The notes below the pieces were generated by a model. It saw only the letters and a list, made by a program, of their open reading frames with translations. It made no database searches and had not been told where the DNA came from. A DNA stretch of 63,221 bases, filler included, from Bigelowiella natans CCMP2755 (taxonomy: Eukaryota > Protista > Cercozoa), in the NCBI GenBank assembly GCA_000320545.1. It is 5 parts of 5 records of this genome, joined end to end, with 100 filler letters (N's around TTAATTAATTAA, not from the genome) between each part and the next. Parts side by side here need not be neighbours in the genome. Positions count along the whole stretch, not along the records: positions 1 to 28,579 come from ADNK01002765.1; 4 more parts are not named here. One strand, given 5' to 3'. Shown one piece after another: positions 5,288 to 48,774 of the stretch (position 1 is its first letter; every line of letters starts with the position of its first letter). The translations under genes and the position numbers were made by a program.

Positions 5288-6534
5288 GATCTTCTTCTTC
5301 TCCCTCCTTGCCAGTGTTTGTTGTCTCTTGGCTGACCTATCGACGCACTCCTTCCCCACCCGCCGATGCAGGCCTTTGAGCCGGGTGCAAAGCGCGTCCA
5401 TCTGGCATTTTTATTCGCGGCAAAAGACAAAGGCATGAATGGACACGGTTTATTGGCCATCTCCAAGAGGACCCAATTCCAAAACTCAGCACGTTGGGCA
5501 AAGCTCACTATGGTTTTTGAATATCAAAACGAAGTAGATCTTACGTGCTCTTTCTGCTCAAAGTACTTGTAATCGTCGCGGATGCAGCGGACGCGGAAGT
5601 CCACTGGCACGATGAGGCAGCAGCGCGGGGCAAGCTTCTTCGTATTCCAAAGCTCAATCGGAAGATGCCTAATCCCTACCCTAGAACCCTCATCTGGTGA
5701 AGAGAGAGGGAGAGAAAGAGAGAGAGGAGGGGGGAGATGGCAAGAAAGCAAGTAAGAAGGAGAAGAAGAAGCAGCAGCAGCAGGACGACGCCGAAAAATG
5801 TGATCGGCTAGGTAACTCTGATAAATGCGATTAGTGTAGCCTGTAATATACAAGTGTGAGGCACAAAGATGAAGATATTACCTTCGATAAACACAGGCCG
5901 TTTAATGTCCATTTCCTCCGCCTTTGCAGCCAAAAGCCCCTCAAAGATCTAATGGGAGATCCCACCCAATACAATACAACGATGATACAAATTAGTAACA
6001 AAAACAAGACAAAAGTAATAACGCGTAGTCCTCCTGCTGCCCGTCCCCCCCCCCCCCCCCTCCCTCTTATTCTCCTTCAACGGCAATGCACTCTGAACGA
6101 CCTTTTGCGTTGGTTGCGGTGTTGTGAGGCTATCACCGAGAATGCTGCCTTTATGGCCTGCACACGCCTCGATATCGATCATCTGCCCTCCTTGTCGCTC
6201 AATCGCCTTGAGGAAATTCGTCTTTCCGCTTCCTAATTCGATGGTGATGTTGTGATAGAGAATGAGGCGTATTGCTGACGAAAGCGCAGGAGCTTTCAGG
6301 AGCAAAATGCTTTGAAAATTATACGTGACTTTTTATTATAATTATTACTATTATTATCATTATTATTATTGTTATCCCTCAGGCACTTGCTGCGACCGCA
6401 AGCATTGGCATTGTTAAGCCGTCGAGCTCTCTCCACTCTTGATATGATACCTGTGGGACCGCTGATGACGATGTATTTTAGGCTTTTCATCTTTTCGAGG
6501 TAAACACGCACTCGTCTACGGTAGGCCTGATGAC

Positions 6535-6570
<36 letters not shown>

Positions 6571-6963
6571 AGTGATGATGACGATGATAGTGATGATGAT
6601 GATCGGAAGTGATGATGATGATGATAAACATAACAATTATTTTCAATAAAACTATAAACATTGTTTTCCAAGTCATATGTGGAAGGCAGCACAATAAGGT
6701 CGGAACAACAACTGCGTAGCTGTTGGCGTGTGCCCCCCCCCCCCACCCCCCCCCAGCTTGCGCGTCCGACCTGATATCCGCCCTTGAGGACGCCGACTTT
6801 GAAACCTACTCGTGCTAGAATCGTCGCCAAGGAATGGCTTCGTTCCCCCCCCCTCCAACAGATGACCAACACCCTCGAATTGCTGCAAATTACATCCAAA
6901 AAAAGGGTTGGGGGGGGCGGGGTACGTTCGGATGCTCAGGAAACAACAACCTCAAATATTATA

Positions 6964-7001
<38 letters not shown>

Positions 7002-7447
7002 TGTGTATATATGCCTATGCGCACTCATGCGTCTATTTCTTTGCTTGTGCGGAGTGGGGAGAAGCTGGTATACGTCATCTTCGAGAGGAAATCGTGATAG
7101 ATCGCACAACACCAACGGAGAGATGATGATCTATTCTACGCCGAATTCAAAGTGTGGCAAGGGCTCTAGATGAAACCCACCACATCTGCCTATTCGGCGG
7201 GGACTCCATTATTATTATTATTATTATTCTCATTACTATTATTATTATTATTATTATCATTATTCTCATCATCATCATCAAAGCGTTTTTGATATATGAG
7301 TACAATTATACGTCATCTTCGAGAGGAAATCGTGATAGATCGCACGACACCAACGGAGAGATGACGATCTATTCTACGCCGAATTCAAAGTGTGGCAAGG
7401 GCTCTAGATGAAACCCACCACATCTGCCTATTCGGCGGAAAGCATCA

Positions 7448-7506
<59 letters not shown>

Positions 7507-8549
7507 CATAATATATATGAGCATATTTGTGTTAAAATAGGACAGTCTCTTCGATGGTTTTCATATCGAATAAAGCCGCAAGAAACACAAGTGACCTCTT
7601 CAGCTGGCTAATGACAGGGCTACGCAATATCTTAGCGATGGACTCCGAGATCAAAGCAGCTCCTATACGCCGTGCCGTAAACCGGTCAGTCTTATACCTA
7701 CGTGGGAAGAAAGACTATTATCGGAGAAACCTGAGAAGCGCGAAGCTTCCGGGTGTGTTGTGTGGCCATTACTTCGTTCCCACGACAGCCCGCTCACTGT
7801 TGTCTAGGACCGGAGTGCTGATTGCTCTGCAAACGATGGGGTTTATATGAGATGAACATTGAAGAATTGCATGTCAGTGATGACAGAGCTGCTTCTACCC
7901 GGGTACATGATCATCTTTGTATTCCGCAGGACTCCTAGCATCTAGGATAAGATCCCAGCCGGTTCCTTCCATGTCATCCTATTAGTATTTTATGGTTAAA
8001 ATAAGTAATGTGTGAGAGGGTATCTTCTTTCCCTCATAGCCGATAATCGTGCGCTGCAGCGTTTTTGTACGTCCAAAACCGACCTTCGCTGCCAGTTTGG
8101 GAACCTTTCCCGTTTTCTCCATATCGTAGAGCCAGATGCTTTCTCGTGCAGGGCTTAGATACATACCCGGGAAGGGTGGCTCGTATTTCTTCTTGGGGCT
8201 GCTTCTTCTTGTCTTAACGTCCCCACTCTGCCCACCGCTGTCTTTCGGGCCACTAGCTTCAGCGCCACCCCCATTCTGCGAGGAAAATGGAACAACACAC
8301 TAAGAATTTCGCAGTCTACAAGATGTTGATCTGTAGCCCCAATACCCGTGGACAACAAAAATCCATCAACCACTAACATCCTGACGAGAGAACACATGAT
8401 CCACGGACCTTTTGCTGACTAATTGGCTCGCAACCACTCGTGGGCGCGGCTTGGAGCGCACTGGCCATATGCCTCAGAACCGTTATCAGTATAGCGATAA
8501 TCCATAGGCTTGCTTTGGTCAGTCCTGCTCGGACCAACCGGATTGGCAT
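4139..8549 (-). CDS. selU: tRNA 2-selenouridine synthase (MnmH/SelU/YbbB; rhodanese plus P-loop) with N-terminal targeting-like extension
   Basis: Stitched exons give LILDARSPAEYKDDHVPG|AISTPVLDNSERAVVGTK|YKTDRFTARRIGA, the rhodanese loop VLVICWRGGERS..LKGGYQ|AYRR and the P-loop ISGPTG|SGKT. Downstream are IDIEACAGHKGSILG, QPTQK|IFEG, RPVFIE|DEGSRVG, RVRCIRDDY and LLETHYDKAY. This is the MnmH motif order. An alternative in-frame start lies at 8645. Confidence 0.92.
7066..7200 (-). ncRNA. Candidate intronic box H/ACA snoRNA, copy 1
   Basis: Hairpin-hinge-hairpin-tail on the host strand: stem CGCCGAAU/AUUCGGCG, H box AGAAUA, second stem (C)AUCAUCU/AGAUGAC(G), terminal AUA box. Both pockets lie 14 nt from their boxes and are complementary to conserved 18S rRNA sequences. 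Confidence 0.75.
7304..7438 (-). ncRNA. Candidate intronic box H/ACA snoRNA, copy 2
   Basis: Direct repeat of copy 1, 238 bp away, with 2 substitutions. Both substitutions fall in stems and outside the guides. It has a perfect CGUCAUCU/AGAUGACG stem, H box AGAAUA and an AUA tail. Confidence 0.78.
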
Positions 8550-8857: not shown

Positions 8858-9680
8858 ATGGGAGGCGGTTGCAGCGCTTCAGTCGATGTGCATACGTCGG
8901 CTTGGGCTCAGGATCCTTCTTCGAGAAACAAGCACATACGAATGTATTCCACGTGCCATTCCATTGCAATCTAACGTATGCTTTAACAGCCTCACTCGTA
9001 CAACAGAGTCTTCGTCGGGCTTGACGGAGGTGGAAAATCTTCCATATGGAACAGGATACAAGGTCTTATTCAGGACGGCGAGCACGTCTTCGAGCATGTG
9101 CCCCTCTGTGAGCCTACATGCAATGTCCGACGACGGGATCTATCGTACAACGGGAAGAAGCTCGTGCTCATCGACACACCGGGGAAATTTTGGTGAGATC
9201 TTCAACCCCAAAAATTATTATTTTCCTTCAGGCTAATCAATGTCCAAATGGCTATGAACCTAAAAACATTCAAATGAGCACCCTCGCCGACTTCCACGCC
9301 CTTGTATTTAGGCTTAGAAGCACGTGGATAGAAGAGGTACAGAATTCCAACTGTGTGGTATATGTTATTGATTCATCGGATAGGATGCGCCTTCAGCTAG
9401 CAAAGGATGAACTTTTTGCCCTTCAAACACAAGTTCTAGGTAGTACCGTCTAATCACGCAAATATTGCGAGTTTCGAAACATTTCTTTGCATATACAGAC
9501 TTCAAAGAGAGGAAGGTTATAGTCCTGCTTACCAAAGCAGATCATCCAAATGCGATCTCCAAAAGCTGTATCCAGAAAGAAGTCGATTTTTCCGAAATAT
9601 ATGCGAAAATTTTATCATTCTCTGCTAGAAAAAATAAAGATGTTAAATCCTTGCTAGATCGATGTATTGGCGTGCTGTAA
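8858..9680 (+). CDS. Arf/Arl-family small GTPase (divergent)
   Basis: Stitched: MGGGCSAS...HIRI|VFVGLDGGGKSS (G1), PT (G2), LIDTPGKFW|LRSTW (G3), VVYVIDSSDRMRLQLAKDEL, LLTKAD (G4), FSAR (G5). Gly2 myristoylation context. Confidence 0.85.
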
Positions 9681-10538: not shown

Positions 10539-11879
10539 CTATTTCATACCTGTATCAGCTTCAAGCAAAGTCTGTGACAATACTTTTCCATGCAAAGGAC
10601 TCCGAGGTCGATCAACTAGACTGACAGTTTTGGCTTTATTTTCTACTTCATTTGGGTTTGCTTGGGCACTGTAAATAACTCTAAAGGGATCTATATTGTA
10701 CACATAATCGTGTAAATGAATCATAATAAATATTACCGCGGCATAAGCAGCAGTAACGAGTGGTAGAGTAAGTGAAATCACTTCCAACCAAGTGAAATTT
10801 CGACAAGATTGGCAAGTAAAAGGGCTGCCAACTCTAAAAGTCGAGAAGTAGTCGGCGTTTCCAGGTCTAAAAACAACTGAAGGTCCAACGAATCGAAGAG
10901 AAGATTCTTCAGTGCACAGAGCCCGCCTCACCCAAGTTCGAATGTAATTGAAAACTACAGGATTTGTAATTTGAGCGTTGGATAGACTACCCAGCAGTTG
11001 AGGTGTATCATCATCTTCTTCATCTTCGAGTAATTCTTCAATTTCTGGGACGGTAGATATCTCCGACATAAAGGAATACGTGTTCGACCCTCCCCGACGA
11101 TCATTTTCAATACAATCAGTTCTATTCATGTAGCAACTTACTTCGACAAATGAATCTTCATCATTTCTAGGTGTTGGAAATTCCGAGGAAGGCAATGTAT
11201 TAACACTTGTTAGCGAAGGACAAAATGAAATTTCACCGTCGTCGTCGAAGATGGGATCCGTAAAACAGCAATCGGTAGTTTCATTACATGGTGATGGGTA
11301 CAAAGTTCTGAAAAATTCAGGAAGACCTTCACCATCACCCCATCGGGACGATTGCAACACTCTTATGCTGAAATTATCGCCGATGAGAGTTGCATCGACA
11401 TTTGTCTCACCTCGAGCTTCCCCCACAATGTTATGCTCACAGATGTACGTTGTGTTCTCCGTGGACTCAGAGAGGACAGCAAAGTTGTTTGCAATGGGAA
11501 GATATTTACAAGTGATACTTGTTGCGAACAGTCCAACTAAAGTGTGCACACTGTCAAGGTAATCGTTGCAAACGTTATCGTATCCGCTTCTTTGATTGAT
11601 CAATGAGGTGTCGCCTGCAAATCTGATCGACATGGGAGTGCCAGTGTGTGGGTCCAAAACGTTTGCTGAAAATGTGAGTTCCTCGACTTGGCATGAGGGA
11701 TCAGGTTGCTCATTGCGCACGTTCACACATATCTGTGTAGTAGTGTAATACGTCACCGCCAACGCAAGTACCAATACAAGTGTGGTAGCCAACAGCGCAT
11801 CCCCAGCAGGGTTTTCCCACTTGAAAGCAGGCCGCAAGACAGGTACTCGAATCAATCTGAGGCCAGTCGGAGTCCCCAT
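10539..11879 (-). CDS. Intronless 446-aa hypothetical protein with two TM helices flanking a Cys-rich ectodomain
   Basis: Single long ORF. Hydrophobic segments ALLATTLVLVLALAVTYY and WLEVISLTLPLVTAAYAAVIFIMIHL enclose many Cys residues and NxS/T sequons. Confidence 0.75.
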   Translation of the reverse strand: MGTPTGLRLIRVPVLRPAFKWENPAGDALLATTLVLVLALAVTYYTTTQICVNVRNEQPDPSCQVEELTFSANVLDPHTGTPMSIRFAGDTSLINQRSGYDNVCNDYLDSVHTLVGLFATSITCKYLPIANNFAVLSESTENTTYICEHNIVGEARGETNVDATLIGDNFSIRVLQSSRWGDGEGLPEFFRTLYPSPCNETTDCCFTDPIFDDDGEISFCPSLTSVNTLPSSEFPTPRNDEDSFVEVSCYMNRTDCIENDRRGGSNTYSFMSEISTVPEIEELLEDEEDDDTPQLLGSLSNAQITNPVVFNYIRTWVRRALCTEESSLRFVGPSVVFRPGNADYFSTFRVGSPFTCQSCRNFTWLEVISLTLPLVTAAYAAVIFIMIHLHDYVYNIDPFRVIYSAQANPNEVENKAKTVSLVDRPRSPLHGKVLSQTLLEADTGMK

Positions 11880-12828: not shown

Positions 12829-13913
12829 TCAGAAGGATCCATGGGCGAGAAATGAACATTGTAGATTCCGGTATGAGTTCTCGGGAAAAGGGCCTGGAGA
12901 ATCAAGATATGTCATTACAATCTTAATAAACTAGAAATACATATGCAAATGTTTAACAAATCAACAAGGTACTGTAAATGGGAAAATATACCTGTCCATT
13001 CATGAGCAAACTACTGACGTATGAGAATGTACTTGGTGACATAATTAAGATGTCAGATTTCACAAGGCTAATAAAATCTGATAGCATTCCAACAGCTTTG
13101 TCAATATGTAAAACCACATCTGTTTGCCCGGCAAGTTCTGCAAAATCCGCAGGATCCCCCTCTGAGTAAACATGGAAAAGAAACTTCTTCCCTTCCGATC
13201 TAAGCTGTCTTCTTACTTCATTCATTATTTCTATAAAGGTTGCCATATAGACGAACCGAGGTTTAGCCGGTGTAACATCACCCCTTCGAATATGCACACC
13301 AACATTTATGTGATCACGAGGGTGATCAATAGGTTTTACTCCTAGTGACTTCATACCCTTGAACAAAGCTTCGCGTATTTGTGTTTTTATACATGGGTTC
13401 CAGTTTTGAAGGATCGTACGAGCAATGTTATGTCGTGTCTTAGAGACAAAGTTCGGATAAATTCCACAACGATAGCAACTATTTCCTGCTGCTAGACCAA
13501 TGGCAGCATTGCATTCGGTAATATTTACCCAATGGGCCATAGTGGCAAATTCGCTGTGACAATAGTCCAACCCTTTGGAAGCTGCCGCAGTCATAGCTTC
13601 CAGAACATATTCATATTGGGCACCGAACCCATCAATTCGGGACCCAGCTGTTATACATCTTTCCGTGAAGCTGTTTAAATCAACAATCATAAGAGTTAGC
13701 TAGGCATCAATCGTGTAATATGCATTACCGAGGAACTACGTTTGCAGTCGAGCAGCCATTATTTCCAACCACGAACTTTACATAGTTATTGCCATCTCCT
13801 AGGTCCGGAACTCTCACACCTCCAGTTCTAATTCCCGACTGGAGAAGCATGTCAGGTTCCTTCCAAGCTGCCCAACAGAGGTGCAGCATCGAAAGGAGGA
13901 GCACAACCATCAT
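12829..13913 (-). CDS. Secretory-pathway glycosyltransferase, GT11 (alpha-1,2-fucosyltransferase)-like
   Basis: Signal peptide MMVVLLLSMLHLCWA in exon ~13728-13913. The main exon has DGFGAQY, VGVHIRRGD (HxRRxD GDP-fucose motif), FHVYSEG and DILIMSPSTFSY. A probable short last exon ends near 12829. Confidence 0.75.
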
Positions 13914-18558: not shown

Positions 18559-19680
18559 CTATGATGAATATATTCGCAATTCCATATCCCATCCACCAGT
18601 ACACAAAGCGTCGCCTCTCTTATTGATTCCAAGAGTGCTAATTCGATCTTCATGGTCTTGAATATCTTGTGAAATTTTTGCAGTTTTTGTGTCCCACATT
18701 GAACAGCGAGCACTTCCATACCCTGCAAAAAGATGACTACCTGTCCTTGAGAACGCAATCGATGTAACTGGAGAGGCATTCTTGGTGTCCTCTATGTCAC
18801 CGTATTTTTGAATTTGCTTTGCAGCCCTTATGTCATATAGCCTACAAGTGGAGTCTTCTGAAGCAGTGGCAAAAGCTCGTCCAGTAGGGAAGAAATCTAC
18901 AGAGTTTACATCTCCAGAATGTCCTGCAAATGTTTGTACTTTTGGATCTTTCGATCGAGAATCCCACAAAATAGCTTTACGATCACAAGAACCAGAAACA
19001 AAAGTACCATTAGCCTCAGTATGGGCAATGCACATAACATCTAATGAGTGTCCAGTAAACGTCGTGGTTCGCGTTTTTTGCTCTACATCCCACAATATGC
19101 ATGTTTGATCTCCGGAAGAAGTCAGCATTTTATTGTCGTTAAGAAAATGACAGGACGATAGGTAACCATCATGACCAGAAAGCTCGGCACGTGGTGTACG
19201 TTTCGAATATTCACCCTGGGTTTCTGGTATTGGATACACAGTACAGAGATTGTCTAAACCACCCGATGCAGCAAACCGCTGGGTTGGAGAAAATGCACAG
19301 GTCATGACCCATGTTGATCGTAATGGAATCACGTGCACTTTAGTAAGAAAGTATGCATCCCATACAATTAATTTTCCATCTTGAGATGCACTGACTAAGT
19401 TATAGGTTTCTTCAGATCCCCACTGCATAGCAGATATTTTCCCATAGTGTCCCTTTAAATGGCGTCTGTTTTCGATGTAAGATGAACAATAAGGTCACTA
19501 TAATCATTACCTTGTTTTGTCAACATTGTAGGCACTAACCTTTTCTGCAAATTTCCGGGTATGGTTTTCTTTTCCCCCAAGTGGGTATCTAATGGTTGCT
19601 CTTTATCGTTGTAGTATGAAAGCTCTCTAAGTTCCGCAATCTTCTTTCTCAAGTCTTCAATTTGAGCAAGGAGTTCCTTC
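18559..19680 (-). CDS. GNB: Heterotrimeric G-protein beta subunit (WD40)
   Basis: N-terminal coiled coil KELLAQIEDLRKKI, one intron, then RRHLKGHYGKISAMQW, LVSASQDGKLIVWD, IPLRSTWVMTCAF, ASGGLDNLCTVY, LSGHDGYLSSCHF and TSSGDQTCILWD. The first exon and start codon are not resolved. Confidence 0.93.
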
Positions 19681-21568: not shown

Positions 21569-24500
21569 TACTTTGTGCGCACTCGATATGCACATATATT
21601 ATATTTTATATATCGATATTCATATATTCTTTTATATGTATAAATGTAAATCATATTATCTACACATAAACATGAGTACAAATATTTGAAACGTAGATAA
21701 TACAATTTATGACCAACTCTTAGGGGCATTATCAACTGAATATGGGCAAGGAAAGCGTGAACGTGATGATTCTGGAGTCAGCGTTCAGTGAGCGAAAAAT
21801 CCCAATCCTCTTTGGTATTTCGTCATTTGCAAAAAATGTTCCGACTCAATGGTCATGATATAATAATTTCAGGTTTAAACCGCAGCAGTTTTATAAAGTA
21901 TAACAATGATCAGACCCAGACCAACAATGAAAGCACAAATCAACAGGTCAGTAAAGTCTTGTTCTTGAAATTCACACATCCAAACTATCTTAGTTCAGAA
22001 GTGGCACTTAAAAACAGGGAGGAAAGAGGATATATATTGAGAAGGAATATCTCAGCATTATTGAAATGCAAATATCAAAAGACAGTGAATTTCTCAAGTC
22101 ACAGGTCATTATGCCTCGTAAGATGAAGTTATTAGTATATGTAAATATTGTCGCTATACTATAGGCCATAGTGAACTACAGTCTCATTATTGGTGGTCGA
22201 GTACATACTATGGACGACACAAAGTTGGTCACATTATCTTCGCCTAAATCAAACACGAAAATCCTCCGGCGAAAAACTCCTTCACAGTTCTCCAGGTATG
22301 CGAAATACGAGACACTTGTGCGGAATATGAGATATTTGAGCTCGATATACCATAAAGATTTTTCAAGCTATCTGAAGCTGCCTTTCTTATGTAACGCGCT
22401 TTCTTATGTAACGTCTAACTTGTTTTGCTTCTTAGATCAATTCCATACTCTGACCATTCGCCTCCCAACGTTCGTCCAATTTTGGGATCCTCCAAATTAA
22501 AGCTTCCTTCTTCAACACTTCCTACTATTCCGAACAGTATCCCTAATAACTACCATCATCGACCCCGCAACTGTCGAAGAAGTGCTAGAAGTCGGGGGAA
22601 TTCTCCTACAGAGGCGCTAGTATTTTTCCAATCACAAAAATCACAGATAGAAATTATTTCTTCTTTATCTGAATATATTTACCTTTATCCAGCATCATCG
22701 CAACAATTCCTCCCCCAATACATTGGAGGCGTTTGCGGTGCAACAACTGAAATCACACTCGTCCCGAAGACAAAATTCTCCAGATAAATCCTTCCAAGGT
22801 GATGTTTGCTCGTAGATTTTATTTTCGAATAACTTTACCTCGATCCCTTTCAGGATTTGTTCGACCTGGTGGGTACTCATCCAAATCGAGTATCAGTAGA
22901 CATAAGCCCTCTATTTATGGAATATCGAAGTCCAGCATAACAAGACACAGGCCTTCTGTTTATGATGCATCCAACTCTAGTATTCTTCAATCTAAGTCCA
23001 GCGTTGTAACGCATAGAGCATCGCTTTATTCAAGGCATTCACCTTCAATCTACGCAAACGATACTGCCAATGATAATTCCTACCCGCATCGAACTATGAG
23101 CCATCATGCAGATGGCAAGGAGAAAATATTGCATTCACCTTACTCAAGCGGTGAAGGACATAACCAAATGATCAACAATAATATTACGAGAGTCTCCTCG
23201 ACACTTCTCGGCTTACCCTCACTCCCGCACAGTCCGATGCAGTCGCCTTCCGTCTCAATTCTCTCTACATCTAAAATGATTCCTCCACCAAACTCAGAGG
23301 TATTCTTGCAATTTATCCATGTAATACCCATTCGATATTTACACTTGGGTTTGTGTCAGATTCGAAGTAGGGTTATTTTGCGCAGTCGCGGGGAAAGAGT
23401 GGATGCGGTTGACGGCGAAGATTTAGTGAAAAGTGTTTTTTTATCAACGCATGCTATTCTACCATCTCTTGTCGTTCCTAATGACGAAGACTCACCTCCT
23501 GTATCCCCGGAGAGGAACAATAAAAAGCATATACTTCGTAAAAGTCAGTTACAACTTCAACGATGCCAAGTACTACTGATATCGAAAATAGAGTAACCCC
23601 AATTGTATTGTATATGTATTTCTTAGACGGGTCCTGTCAAGGAAATCTTAATAGCACGAGCAGCCTGGCACAATGTATACACTCTGTCAGTCATATATCT
23701 ACACCTTCTCTTGTCGAGCAAGTAACGCCTCCGCCCTCAACATCGAATCTGCGTGTAAGCGATATTATTGCCGAAAGCAGCATTGCCAACCTTGGAATAG
23801 AAAATAGCGCTGGAAGTACCATAGAGTATGGAGTTAAAAATCGGATTACTGAATACTTTGGGGAATATCATAAGAAATGTACCGTTGACAATAATGAAGA
23901 ACCCGTAGATTCTCTCAAATCGCCCCTTCCAATCTCATTCCAGGTATTTATACCCTCCATTGCATATGCTTTTCTATTAATATGCCATAAAAAAAATGCA
24001 ATTATTCTAATACAAAGGCATTGGAACTTCAAGATGCAAAGTCACAAAAAGCTTCGCAAAGGAGCAATGTATTGCCAAGGAAAGCTAAAATTCTAAAGAG
24101 GCTTAAGGGCCGAAGTGCTAGTGTTGGCAGTGTTGGAGATATTATTGGCAGTGGTTTACAAATGAGGGCAGGCTATGGGGGCAAAATAATCTCACAATCT
24201 CGCTCAAAGGTTAGCTTACATAATGTTACTATAACTAGAAAACTGTAGTGGTTATTAAATTCAGTTAAATTTTCATCAGACCACTTCACGTAGTCGATCC
24301 TACGGTCATAATCGTACAAACAGCTCTTCAAATATTACTACCAGTACCGTTACTAGAGGTAGCATGGTTTCAAGTCGTTCCTCTTTGTCAAGACGAAATA
24401 ATAATCTCCACAACGACAGAAGATCCCTGCGAGTTTTCTCTGTCTCTGACAACTGTGACATTGAACTAATTGTTCGGATAGTTGACATTTTGGACCGAGG

Positions 24501-26604: not shown

Positions 26605-27523
26605 TCAACGAGGTAGGCTACCCAAGCATTGCTGAATGCTGAGTGTCCTTGAGAAAGACGGGAGCTTTGCCTGTGAAGTCTTCTCAGAGAGGAAACGGCT
26701 CATCAGCAGCCTTCTCTTCTGCACGCTCCTACTGCCCTTCGATTTCACATCATCAGCTTCTCCTTTGGTAGCTTGAAACGATGACGTAGACGACCCCATT
26801 TCATGGAGGGAACTATGATCTTCTATCCGCTTGATGACATATCCTTCCTCTTCCCCCTTCTCCTCTTCCTCCTCAAGCCCCCCCCCCCTGTTCAAAGGGC
26901 TGCACTGCCTGCTGTCTCTACTCGCTCCCTTCCTTCTCCCAATGGCCTCCTCGTGTTCTAGAAGTGCCTCGGAGACTATATTCTCCAAAACGGAGGGGGA
27001 TTCCCCAACTCCCTGACGCTGGATCATGTCGCCGATCTCCGAAAGGGTCATCCCCGCGGAGACGCAGCGCTGCAAAAATAGCGTGGTGATGACGACGGTA
27101 ATGGCGCACTCCTCTGGGATGCCGAGGCGAATCAGCACCGAGGCATCGAAGAATGGGTCAAGCGATAAAACATAATCCTTCGTTTCCTCGGAGAACGGTT
27201 CTCTTGCCTGTCGCCAGTACAGCCACTCGAAATTTGCGTCGGACAGCTAAAGAAGTGGGAAGGGGGCCGGGGGGGAGGGGGGGGGGGACAGGGGACAGAA
27301 CGGAAGAGAAATCAGCGAGTCTTTCAATATAGCACACCGCCATTGAATATGATTTTTGGGAATAAATCGATAGGCTGCACGCATGAGGAGTACGTACCTG
27401 CCTGAAGTTTGGAAGAGTGTAGGCGTGGTCAATAGGGACGAGTTTCATCGTCGCAGCTTTCCTCGTCTTCTTCGCCTTCTTCTTATCATCACCATGTTGC
27501 CTTGATGTAGTAGCGGCAGCAGC

Positions 27524-27555
<32 letters not shown>

Positions 27556-28499
27556 CAGAAGTAGTAGAAGTAGTAGAGAAGGAGGTGGAGGCCGAGGAGG
27601 ACGGGGAGGTATTGCACCTGCTTCTACTCACACTGCTGCTTTCCGTGGAAGTGGATACGCTATCACCAAACTCCATGTCTACGGCGGCAAGAGCAGGATT
27701 TCGAGGGGTCGCTTCCTTACCCTCCCCCCCCCCCCTTCCAAGCTCCTCGTCGCCGCCTCCTTTGCAGGGGGAAACGAGGAGGTTGCCGAGATGACGATCC
27801 ATATTGAATAGCCTGATATCCAATATACCGATTCTGTGGACGTTCTCGCGATCGAATGCGCTGCTACCGTACTCATCAGCGCTCCCAACGTTGGAAACAT
27901 AGGCCTGGACACTTCCGACCTGAGAAGGGGGGGGAGAGAAGAAGAAGAAGAAGAAGAAGAAGAAGAAGGAAAAGAAGGAGAAATCAGCTTACGATCGGAA
28001 ATAAGAATCCTAAATCCCTGGAAGGGACTGCTACACATACGATATAAAACGTTTCTCTCTCTAACCCTTTCTCTCTCTCCCTCTCTCTTTCCCTCCTCCG
28101 TGATCATAACTCCCCGTGTTCTTACGTCTCCCTCACTCCACCCTCACACAGCGTTGGGACTGACCTTCCCAGCGTTCTGCGAGACGTTAAACCGCTGCTT
28201 GACGAGCCTTATACAGGGGTTGTTATCAGCGAAGAGGCGGCATTCGTACCAGTGCTGCGTGCCTCCTTTCTGCTTGCTCGCTGCAAGGTGAGGCTTGCAG
28301 AGGATGATGGTGGGCACGATGAAAGCGATGTACTAACTCCTTCCTTTCTATCTGCAACGCTGCTGGCTGGGTTATCATTCTTGTCCAAGCTCTGTTCTCG
28401 CTCTCCCCCCCCCCTCGGCCTCCTCCTCCTCCTCATCTTTGGACTGCAGTCCTCTTGTCGTTTTTCGCTCAAGATTCGAACAAGTTTCTGGATCTCCAT
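26605..28499 (-). CDS. Type II phosphatidylinositol 4-kinase (PI4K gamma-like), partial
   Basis: GSVQAYV, VHRIGILDIRLFNMDRHLGNLLV (catalytic DRH..N), LVPIDHAYTLP, FEWLYWRQAREPFS and AGMTLSEIG. The 5' part is cut by the contig end, and further 3' exons toward ~25785 are possible. Confidence 0.85.
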
Positions 28500-46902: not shown

Positions 46903-47363
46903 TGCGTATTTTTACACCGAGGAAGATCTCAAAAGCAAAATGGCAGAGTTGCTGCTGCCAAGCATTTAATTCCTGACTTTCGTGCACCATGACTTAAAAA
47001 GCAGCCAAAAATATCGCTGTTCTTAGTACAATATCATCATAATCATAATCACGTGAAAAATTGTAAATCTTCCACAGCTCGATCTACCGGAGGAGGAGGA
47101 GGATGATATGCTTGATCAAGCTGTAAGTGTGTGAGGTGTAGAAGCAGATATATAGATGTAGGATATGTGTGTGTGTGTGTTATATTATATGTGAGGGAGG
47201 AAGGGGACCGGATGGAGAAGCTAATGTTGGTTTTACGTGACAATTTATGCAGACGTGTCTAACTGCTACCTCTCGCCTTGGGTGCCAGATTATTCTCTCC
47301 AAAGTTGACACTACAAATATTACAGAATCAAATCATGCGTTGGATAATATCCTAATGTGGAGA

Positions 47364-47403
<40 letters not shown>

Positions 47404-47584
47404 TTATTTATTTGTATATAAATGAATGTGGCGCACATACGAATAAACAATGAAATGGCCTGCTTGTTGAGATTTGCGTTGGTGCCTGTACGCATCGTAG
47501 GAGCTGGATGGAATGACTGTGACGTTGCCAAAGTTCAGCAAAAACTTTTATGTCGATGGTAGCGTTTTGATACATCTCCCTCTC

Positions 47585-47633
<49 letters not shown>

Positions 47634-47801
47634 ATGCTCTTACTCGATATATGAAAGTTTTTCTTTCTCCTCGAAAGTATGATATTTCCCTGTTTTTGGT
47701 ACAATCATCAAATACTTTTATCTGCATCTTTCCATTGAGCGTAAATCAATGGAGTTCATTGTGTTTTCGCTCATCTAGGCCACATCCCGCAGCCGCATTA
47801 G
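45957..47801 (+). CDS. Mitochondrial adrenodoxin-type 2Fe-2S ferredoxin
   Basis: KGKVGDNLLYL, LEGACEASLACSTCHVIL, PEEEEDDMLDQA|TCLTATSRLGCQIILSK|ELDGMTVTLP..NFYVDG|HIPQPH*, with a basic presequence. Confidence 0.93.
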
Positions 47802-48774
47802 CTAAGAGGTTGCTTCGAGGAGGCGGCGCATGGTGCCCCGCCAATGTGCGTGCAACTTTGCTGCTCGCAGCTCCGTCCAGAATTCGCGATGGTACGATTG
47901 GCCAAACACGGTATGAGGCGGCTATATTGAGGTGTTTGACGTATACTATTTGCATCAAAGACAACTTAACAATTCACACATTTGCATGTGTGTGTTTGTT
48001 GTACACACTCGATTTGCCACATACGCTGCCGGGTTAGCTACATCTATAGACATGCGTACGTCAGCAGCAATATTCAGCAGCCTGCGATGTAGCCGGCGGC
48101 GGCATAGGGCATGCAGAGACGCAGCCTAGTATCGTGAGCCGCACGCGTATGCGCACGTGCATACGTGGCATGTACATATGAGACGGATACGATGTAATGA
48201 TGTGATTGAATCTTTTCAATGACCCCTATCTAGCTATGTGCAAGACTATGTACACATGCATATGCTAGCTAGCTAGCATGTGTGGCCATGTAAATACAAG
48301 CTAGTATGCTGCTAGCGGCTGCGCAGCGGTGTACGCTTAGGACCATTGTGCATAGACCATATGCTAGCATGTAGGCCATTATTCATGCGCACGATGCATA
48401 CATGCGTAATGCGTAGAGTGACACAATATATAATACCGACTATACTTGTACATGCACAGCAGCTCAAGGCAGTCTAGCAGTGGCGGAGCTACACGCAAAA
48501 GCTATTATTAGATGTTGCAAAAATGCGTTCCAGCGACACGCAATGTAAATGCATTCTGATCGATGCTACATCATGCATGGCAACAATTAAGCCATTAGTG
48601 TGATCCAATAAGCTACAACATATATCTGCTGCGGCTCGCATGGCACGCGTGACACATCTAGACATAGCACACGTATACATGGAAACGTCTTGATATGAGC
48701 TGCCAGCGGCATCACCAGCAATGATAATGATAATGTATACGAAATAAACCACGCTTGGGGGCGAATTGTACCTA

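Follow-up and report, generated by a model that had tools for sequence, protein, structure and literature searches.

The Host Gene and Its Intron

The window considered here is the whole stretch of DNA to which the positions refer, 63,221 nt of the Bigelowiella natans CCMP2755 assembly (GCA_000320545.1) with filler included, of which positions 1 to 28,579 come from ADNK01002765.1. On its minus strand lies a gene that, judged by the profile matches of its exons, is a homologue of SelU/MnmH, the tRNA 2-selenouridine synthase. Three minus-strand exon ORFs match NF008752/TIGR03167 in order (profile positions 90-129, 145-202, and 220-267), with E-values of 1.6e-12, 4.3e-15, and 2e-4, the exons having been scored singly and not as a whole protein. 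The N-terminal exons include DARSPAEY...HVPG and ERAVVGT, and the upstream exons read ...DLILDARSPAEYKDDHVPG, ...NSERAVVGTK, and ...YKTDRFTARRIGAALISESIAKILRSPVISQLK. The exon ending in ...YKTDRFTARRIGAALISESIAKILRSPVISQLK occupies 7596..7699 on the minus strand (its 5' limit is approximate), and the exon downstream of it, SNSRVLVICWRGGERSHSLATILARVGFKVGVLKGGYQ, occupies 6771..6882 on the same strand, contains the rhodanese active-site Cys loop, and is the one that matches NF008752 (MnmH) over profile positions 90-129.

Between these two exons is a GT...AG intron of 713 nt (6883..7595, minus strand), with the donor AAGAG/GTCACT at 7596/7595 and the acceptor TTTGCAG/C at 6883/6882. The phase of the intron fits, AG and C joining to form a Ser codon, and the flanking exons share a reading frame over the junction. 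This is the intron between the ISQLK and SNSRVLVIC exons in which the first-pass annotation had placed a tandem pair of candidate snoRNAs, and its existence is borne out. Both snoRNA copies are sense to the host gene; 157 nt separate the donor from the start of copy 2, and about 180 nt separate the end of copy 1 from the acceptor.

The SelU introns are filled with dense microsatellites of the types (TGA)n, (AT)n, (ATT)n, (CT)n, and (TA)n (6528-6625, 6956-7012, 7208-7278, and 7452-7518), and such tracts bracket both snoRNA copies. Homopolymers are also found here, including a nine-G run on the coding strand inside a SelU exon (6844-6852, within the codons for WRGGE) and C/G runs of 10-13 in adjacent introns (6733-6756 and 6908-6921). 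Length errors arise easily in long homopolymer runs and could throw the annotated SelU exon out of frame. The neighbours of the locus are ordinary eukaryotic nuclear genes. Immediately upstream of SelU, an Arf-family exon lies on the other strand (about 9310-9430, plus strand), and the minus strand carries a family-11 glycosyltransferase-like ORF (12953-13690), a G-protein beta subunit (18559-19428; PF25391, E 2e-91), and a weak piece of a PI3/PI4-kinase (27158-27823). An ORF of 446 aa that lacks introns and has hydrophobic segments towards both termini (10539-11879, minus strand) had no Pfam match and was absent from the protein collection searched; it looks lineage-specific.

A Duplicated Unit in the Intron

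The host intron contains a direct repeat with a unit of 132 nt, located at 7069-7200 and 7307-7438. The two copies start 238 nt apart and are identical at 130 of 132 positions in the plus-strand comparison, so that the repeat of about 132 bp with two mismatches described in the first-pass annotation is confirmed. When each copy is aligned together with about 90 nt of flank per side, identity breaks off sharply at both unit ends and the flanks cannot be aligned, the sequence outside the repeat unit being mostly microsatellite of the (ATT)n, (CT)n, and (TA)n types. Read on the strand of the host gene, identity between the copies stops exactly at an AUA trinucleotide, and the next three bases differ (CCA vs. 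AUU), as is expected if constraint is limited to the body of the RNA. Taken together, the sharp limits of identity and the fully diverged flanks indicate that purifying selection, or else gene conversion, has probably acted on exactly an RNA-sized unit.

Only two copies are found by BLAST in the 91.4-Mb assembly. A covariance model (R1) built from both copies and the H/ACA structure scores copy 2 at 174.5 bits and detects no further or diverged copies in the same genome. The count of two excludes a dispersed repeat, and together with the lack of a tRNA-like part it rules out a transposable element or SINE. A second copy that arose in assembly, from a genome with one unit only, might be suspected at a locus ringed by misassembly-prone microsatellites. 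The copies nevertheless differ at two positions and have flanks that are different and unique on both sides, which argues against simple assembly duplication and makes such an artefact exceedingly improbable.

Anatomy and Fold of the Candidate RNA

Box H/ACA snoRNAs carry an ACA box, or one of its variants (AUA, AAA, AGA), 3 nt from the mature 3' end. They recognize their targets by two-part complementarity around an unpaired U-N, with a distance of 14-16 nt from the target position to the H or ACA box. Read on the minus strand, as the host gene is, each repeat copy corresponds to a candidate H/ACA snoRNA of about 135 nt, counting 3 nt past the AUA. Copy 2 (7304..7438, minus strand), the closer of the two to the 5' end of the intron, folds better than copy 1 (7066..7200, minus strand), which is closer to the 3' end.

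The first hairpin is built on a lower stem of CGCCGAAU/AUUCGGCG, with the pocket arms AGGCAGA (5') and CUUUGA (3') and an upper stem-loop of UGUGGUGGGUUU-CAUCUA-GAGCCC-UU-GCCACA, in which the pairing is UGUGGU-GGGUUU/GAGCCC-GCCACA. A single U after AUUCGGCG leads to the H box AGAAUA, which fits ANANNA and was identified both in the sequence and in the descriptor scan outlined below (7370..7375, and 7132-7137 in copy 1, minus strand); GAU comes next, and then hairpin 2. The latter comprises a lower stem of CGUCAUCU/AGAUGACG, a 5' arm of (U)CUCCGUU, an upper stem of 8 bp, and a 3' arm of UCUCGA, and is followed by 1 nt (U) and the tail box AUA (7307..7309, and 7069-7071 in copy 1, minus strand). 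Direct counting gives 14 nt from the first base of the 3' guide arm to the box in both pockets, as had been claimed. One extra unpaired guide base is present below the upper stem in each pocket.

Folding with RNAfold, the check that the first-pass annotation had proposed, gives a hairpin-hinge-hairpin-tail shape with a single-stranded hinge in both copies. Copy 2 has a minimum free energy of -49.7 kcal/mol (z -4.4), a stability attained by none of 200 shuffled sequences, and copy 1 has a minimum free energy of -42.4 kcal/mol (z -2.3), which 4 of 200 shuffles attain. In the minimum-energy fold, pairing of CAGA with UUUG closes part of pocket 1. The stems, the H box, and an AUA tail box at the point where inter-copy identity ends had all been proposed in that annotation, and all are found in the sequence and in the predicted folds.

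Both differences between the copies fall in hairpin 2 and leave the guide arms and boxes untouched. At RNA position 93 (window 7108) copy 2 has C and copy 1 has U, replacing a C-G pair by U.G with pairing kept; this is the pairing-preserving substitution noted earlier. The second change, which had been left undescribed, is found at RNA position 74 (window 7127), where G in copy 2 is A in copy 1. Here a G-C pair becomes an A.C mismatch at the second pair of the hairpin 2 lower stem, near its base, and pairing is broken. The two substitutions weaken hairpin 2 and make copy 1 the weaker copy.

Predicted Targets in 18S rRNA

The genome is eukaryotic, and the Rfam models for eukaryotic SSU and LSU rRNA located several rDNA units in it, which provided an 18S sequence of 1797 nt, an ITS region, and a 28S sequence of 3329 nt for the target search. 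Full 18S copies number at least six, over six contigs. On two contigs the rDNA units are not arrayed head to tail but have opposite orientations, at distances of 30-50 kb (C1238, 9457-15263 plus and 46969-51679 minus; C1247, 48-1144 minus and 53823-59641 plus). Every U in the 18S, ITS, and 28S sequences was evaluated as a potential target in a scan similar to snoGPS, in which 0-1 unpaired guide base was allowed beside the upper stem and G.U pairs were counted as 0.5.

For pocket 1 the 5' guide arm is GGCAGA (7423..7428, and 7185-7190 in copy 1, minus strand), which pairs with UCUGCC at 18S positions 291-296, and the 3' guide arm is UUUGA (7385..7389, and 7147-7151 in copy 1, minus strand), which pairs with UCAAA at 284-288 and leaves U289 and U290 unpaired. 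The 18S carries UCAAAUUUCUGCC at 284-296 (UCAAA-UU-UCUGCC), the very pairing site anticipated in the first-pass annotation. Over all rRNA scanned, SSU U289 is the top target of this pocket, with 6+5 bp and a score of 11 against 9.5 for the runner-up; the match rises to 6+7 bp and a score of 13 if two lower-stem pairs open. When the pocket arms are shuffled, 2-8 of 1000 shuffles score as high. The complementarity of pocket 1 is convincing on its own, and 18S U289 is very likely the target of its hairpin.

The corresponding arms of pocket 2 are UCUCCGU (7353..7359, and 7115-7121 in copy 1, minus strand), which pairs with ACGGAGA at 18S positions 347-353, and CUCG (7320..7323, and 7082-7085 in copy 1, minus strand), which pairs with CGGG at 341-344 and includes one G.U; U345 and G346 are unpaired. 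SSU U345 is the highest-scoring site for this pocket in all rRNA scanned (7+4 bp including the G.U, score 10.5, runner-up 8.5), and the earlier prediction holds to that extent. The 18S reads CGGGUGACGGAGA at 341-353 (CGGG-UG-ACGGAGA), and not CGGGUAACGGAGA as had been expected, so that a G and not an A follows the target U. The pairing is unaffected, because this base is itself unpaired, 3' of the target. Among shuffles of the pocket arms, 87-121 of 1000, or about 10%, score as high, and the complementarity of pocket 2 alone is only suggestive, being marginal against chance. The joint probability for the two pockets estimated from shuffling is about 5e-4. U345 is somewhat more likely than not to be a target of the candidate RNA.

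The marginal score of pocket 2, with a 3' arm of 4 bp that includes a G.U, is what would be seen if the RNA were a real H/ACA snoRNA in which only the 5' hairpin guides, at U289, and the 3' hairpin serves assembly and stability, U345 being coincidental or the hairpin having some other target. A further point for such a division of labour is that the yeast pseudouridine table lists none at the position equivalent to U345 (PMC5699541). Set against this are the rank of U345 as the single best site for pocket 2 over all rRNA, the distance of exactly 14 nt from the pocket to AUA, the guide arms free of substitutions, and the coincidence of U345, by anchor counting, with the known human pseudouridine U406. 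On balance a role for the 5' hairpin alone is unlikely, and guidance by both hairpins is the preferred reading.

Probable Correspondence to Pseudouridines of Yeast and Human

Both of the predicted sites appear to be equivalent to pseudouridines of other eukaryotes. In yeast 18S rRNA, Psi302 is guided by snR49 (PMC5699541), and in human 18S rRNA, U406 is guided by SNORA71A (PMC6584411). Published yeast sites at C414, A420, A436, and U466 map with an offset of 13 to C401, A407, A423, and U453 of the 18S of this organism (PMC5699541). Offsets of 12 and 14 fail for these anchor sites. Human and yeast 18S numbering are presumably offset by 48 (C462/C414 and so on), by which human 406 would correspond to yeast 358 and to U345 here. 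U289, which lies 56 nt upstream of U345, would then correspond to yeast 302, provided that the conserved stretch is without an indel. A literature search for the sequence context of yeast U302 or human U406 found none. The assignment of the two sites to yeast U302 and human Psi406 made in the first-pass annotation agrees with this count from anchor sites, an equivalence that is one of counting and not of alignment.

Occurrence by Chance

The candidate could be a duplicated piece of intron that fortuitously folds like an H/ACA RNA and matches rRNA, with no functional RNA produced. The frequency of such structures was assessed with a descriptor of the H/ACA architecture. It called for 6 or more base pairs in the lower stem, a 5' pocket arm of 4-10 nt and a 3' arm of 4-9 nt, an upper stem-loop at least as stable as -6 kcal/mol, a pocket-to-box distance of 14-16 nt, an ANANNA hinge, a second hairpin of the same kind that begins no more than 8 nt from the H box, and a final ACA or AUA. 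Copy 2 is accepted by the full descriptor. Copy 1 is rejected, because the upper stem of its hairpin 2 does not reach the required -6 kcal/mol. Elsewhere in the window the descriptor accepts a single stretch, at about 23600-23700 on the minus strand, whose best rRNA scores are a poor 8 and 9 and which is probably a chance occurrence.

The descriptor has a single match, with guide scores of 8 and 9, in 174 kb of further DNA of the same genome (both strands scanned), and five in dinucleotide-preserving shuffles of the window that total 5.03 Mb. The summed guide score is at most 17.5 among these decoys and 23.5 for the candidate. A linear motif consisting of GGCAGA ... UUUGA-N9-ANANNA ... UCUCCGU occurs 73 times in a metagenome collection, where no match forms more than 5 of the 8 lower-stem pairs or combines the 3' pocket with an ACA box. 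Many of the 73 are one repeated sequence from gut-metagenome contigs, which is bacterial-looking and is not taken as human DNA. Given the descriptor nulls and this control, the combination of architecture and guides is very unlikely as a chance product within a stretch of 28 kb.

Single-pocket patterns occur 125-153 times in the organism's own genome, a count that is about that of reversed-pattern controls and is for that reason uninformative; the ease with which one pocket recurs by chance is compatible with a fortuitous structure. The failure to detect relatives is likewise compatible with it. The exact hinge pattern had no matches in the metagenomes, a word search with the SelU exon ORF for an orthologous locus gave no match, and orthologues of the candidate snoRNA were detected neither by these routes nor by the covariance model in the organism's own genome; no Rfam family is reached at threshold (see below). 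A fortuitous structure is harder to reconcile with the rarity of the full architecture, with decoy guide scores that never come near those of the candidate, with the joint probability of the pockets, and with identity that ends precisely at the predicted ends of the RNA amid completely diverged flanks. A chance origin is accordingly regarded as quite improbable.

Proposed Processing and Function

The features of the class that can be read from DNA, which are the fold, the H box, the spacing, and the pockets, are all present, and the tandem pair very probably represents real, canonical box H/ACA snoRNA genes. The reading as a whole, in which two tandem genes for one H/ACA snoRNA of about 135 nt lie sense in an intron of SelU/MnmH and the RNA guides modification of 18S U289 and U345, is given a probability of roughly 0.8. 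From the sequence we infer that the RNA would be expressed, processed, and bound by protein, and that U289 and U345 would be modified.

The RNA is envisaged as being released from the spliced host intron. As one intron holds both units, the spacer would have to be cut and the ends trimmed for each RNA to be freed; endonucleolytic cleavage between the units and exonuclease digestion up to the bound proteins, the scheme of the intronic clusters of plants, would provide for both. The mature RNA would assemble with Cbf5/dyskerin, Nop10, Gar1, and Nhp2, and would place the two 18S uridines in the active site of Cbf5. A Cbf5 gene is found elsewhere in the genome (291 bits, above the curated cut-off), so the enzyme for guided pseudouridylation exists in this organism. 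The 5' hairpin is predicted to guide U289, the equivalent of the snR49-guided yeast Psi302, and the 3' hairpin, less certainly, U345, the equivalent of the SNORA71-guided human Psi406.

SelU is a bacterial-type gene. If it was acquired by transfer, it would later have gained spliceosomal introns, one of which was colonized by a dual-guide H/ACA snoRNA particular to this lineage, which then duplicated in place. This history is speculative and rather doubtful; if true, it would furnish a datable example of the mobility of a snoRNA gene into a transferred gene. The locus as it stands would show that a non-ribosomal, bacterial-type tRNA-modification gene can act as a snoRNA host, and the layout of two units per intron implies processing by a spacer cut. 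The analysis further contributes an H/ACA snoRNA family that has no annotation and escapes all Rfam models, from a eukaryote whose snoRNAs are probably poorly catalogued, and predicts two specific 18S pseudouridines, at U289 and U345, that are directly checkable. Current understanding of H/ACA RNPs is unchanged, the host gene and the tandem arrangement being curiosities and not surprises.

Relationship to Known H/ACA snoRNAs

A search of the whole piece against Rfam at gathering thresholds returned no family. The one near-match is RF01658, the H/ACA RNA ceN81 of Caenorhabditis, which aligns end-to-end with both hairpins and both boxes in register and scores 22.7 bits for copy 2 (E 0.03-0.1) and 14.4 bits for copy 1. 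These values fall far short of the gathering score of 50 bits, and the consensus has other guide arms, which leaves a likeness at the level of the class only; a literature search on ceN81 found nothing. No other H/ACA family of Rfam appeared even at E-values up to 10 in a search of the 143-nt locus. Permissive searching otherwise yields only noise: miRNA models (mir-297) align to the (TA)n tract below threshold, and C/D models, with E above 5, align to the other strand. A C/D snoRNA on the plus strand was considered and is ruled out: UGAUGA in copy 1 is UGACGA in copy 2, there is no D box, and the orientation is antisense to the host.

Dual-site guides and intronic hosting are the norm for H/ACA snoRNAs. 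The candidate shares with this class the hairpin-hinge-hairpin-tail shape, the ANANNA hinge, the ACA-type tail box, the length of about 135 nt, the sense intronic position, and two internal-loop pockets, each pairing in two parts around an unpaired U-N and lying 14 nt from its box; nothing that defines the class sets it apart. The first-pass annotation had presented the AUA box, the guiding of two sites by one RNA, and the intronic location as unusual, a view that does not hold, all three being ordinary and AUA being a documented and accepted variant of the ACA box (PMC7991803, PMC6984369). The pair is best described as an unannotated example of a well-known kind of gene, for which dual guiding, AUA, and intronic hosting are already known. 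In having two units in one intron it resembles the clusters of plants and some protists, whereas yeast and vertebrates have one per intron.

The yeast snR49 RNA guides 18S Psi120, Psi211, and Psi302 as well as 25S Psi990. Pocket 1 of the candidate is predicted to guide the U302-equivalent uridine, but sequence and structure similarity to snR49 is not detectable and the second target differs, so that the likeness is functional and not one of homology. Human SNORA71 (RF00056) is comparable through pocket 2, which is predicted to guide the U406-equivalent uridine, but its model matches neither the whole piece at the gathering score nor the 143-nt locus at E-values up to 10, and the target of the other pocket is not common to the two. 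The candidate would act like snR49 at one site and like SNORA71 at the other, but is not a demonstrable member of either family. If both predictions are correct, a single RNA would serve two targets, Psi302 and Psi406, of which the first is otherwise known from yeast and the second from human.
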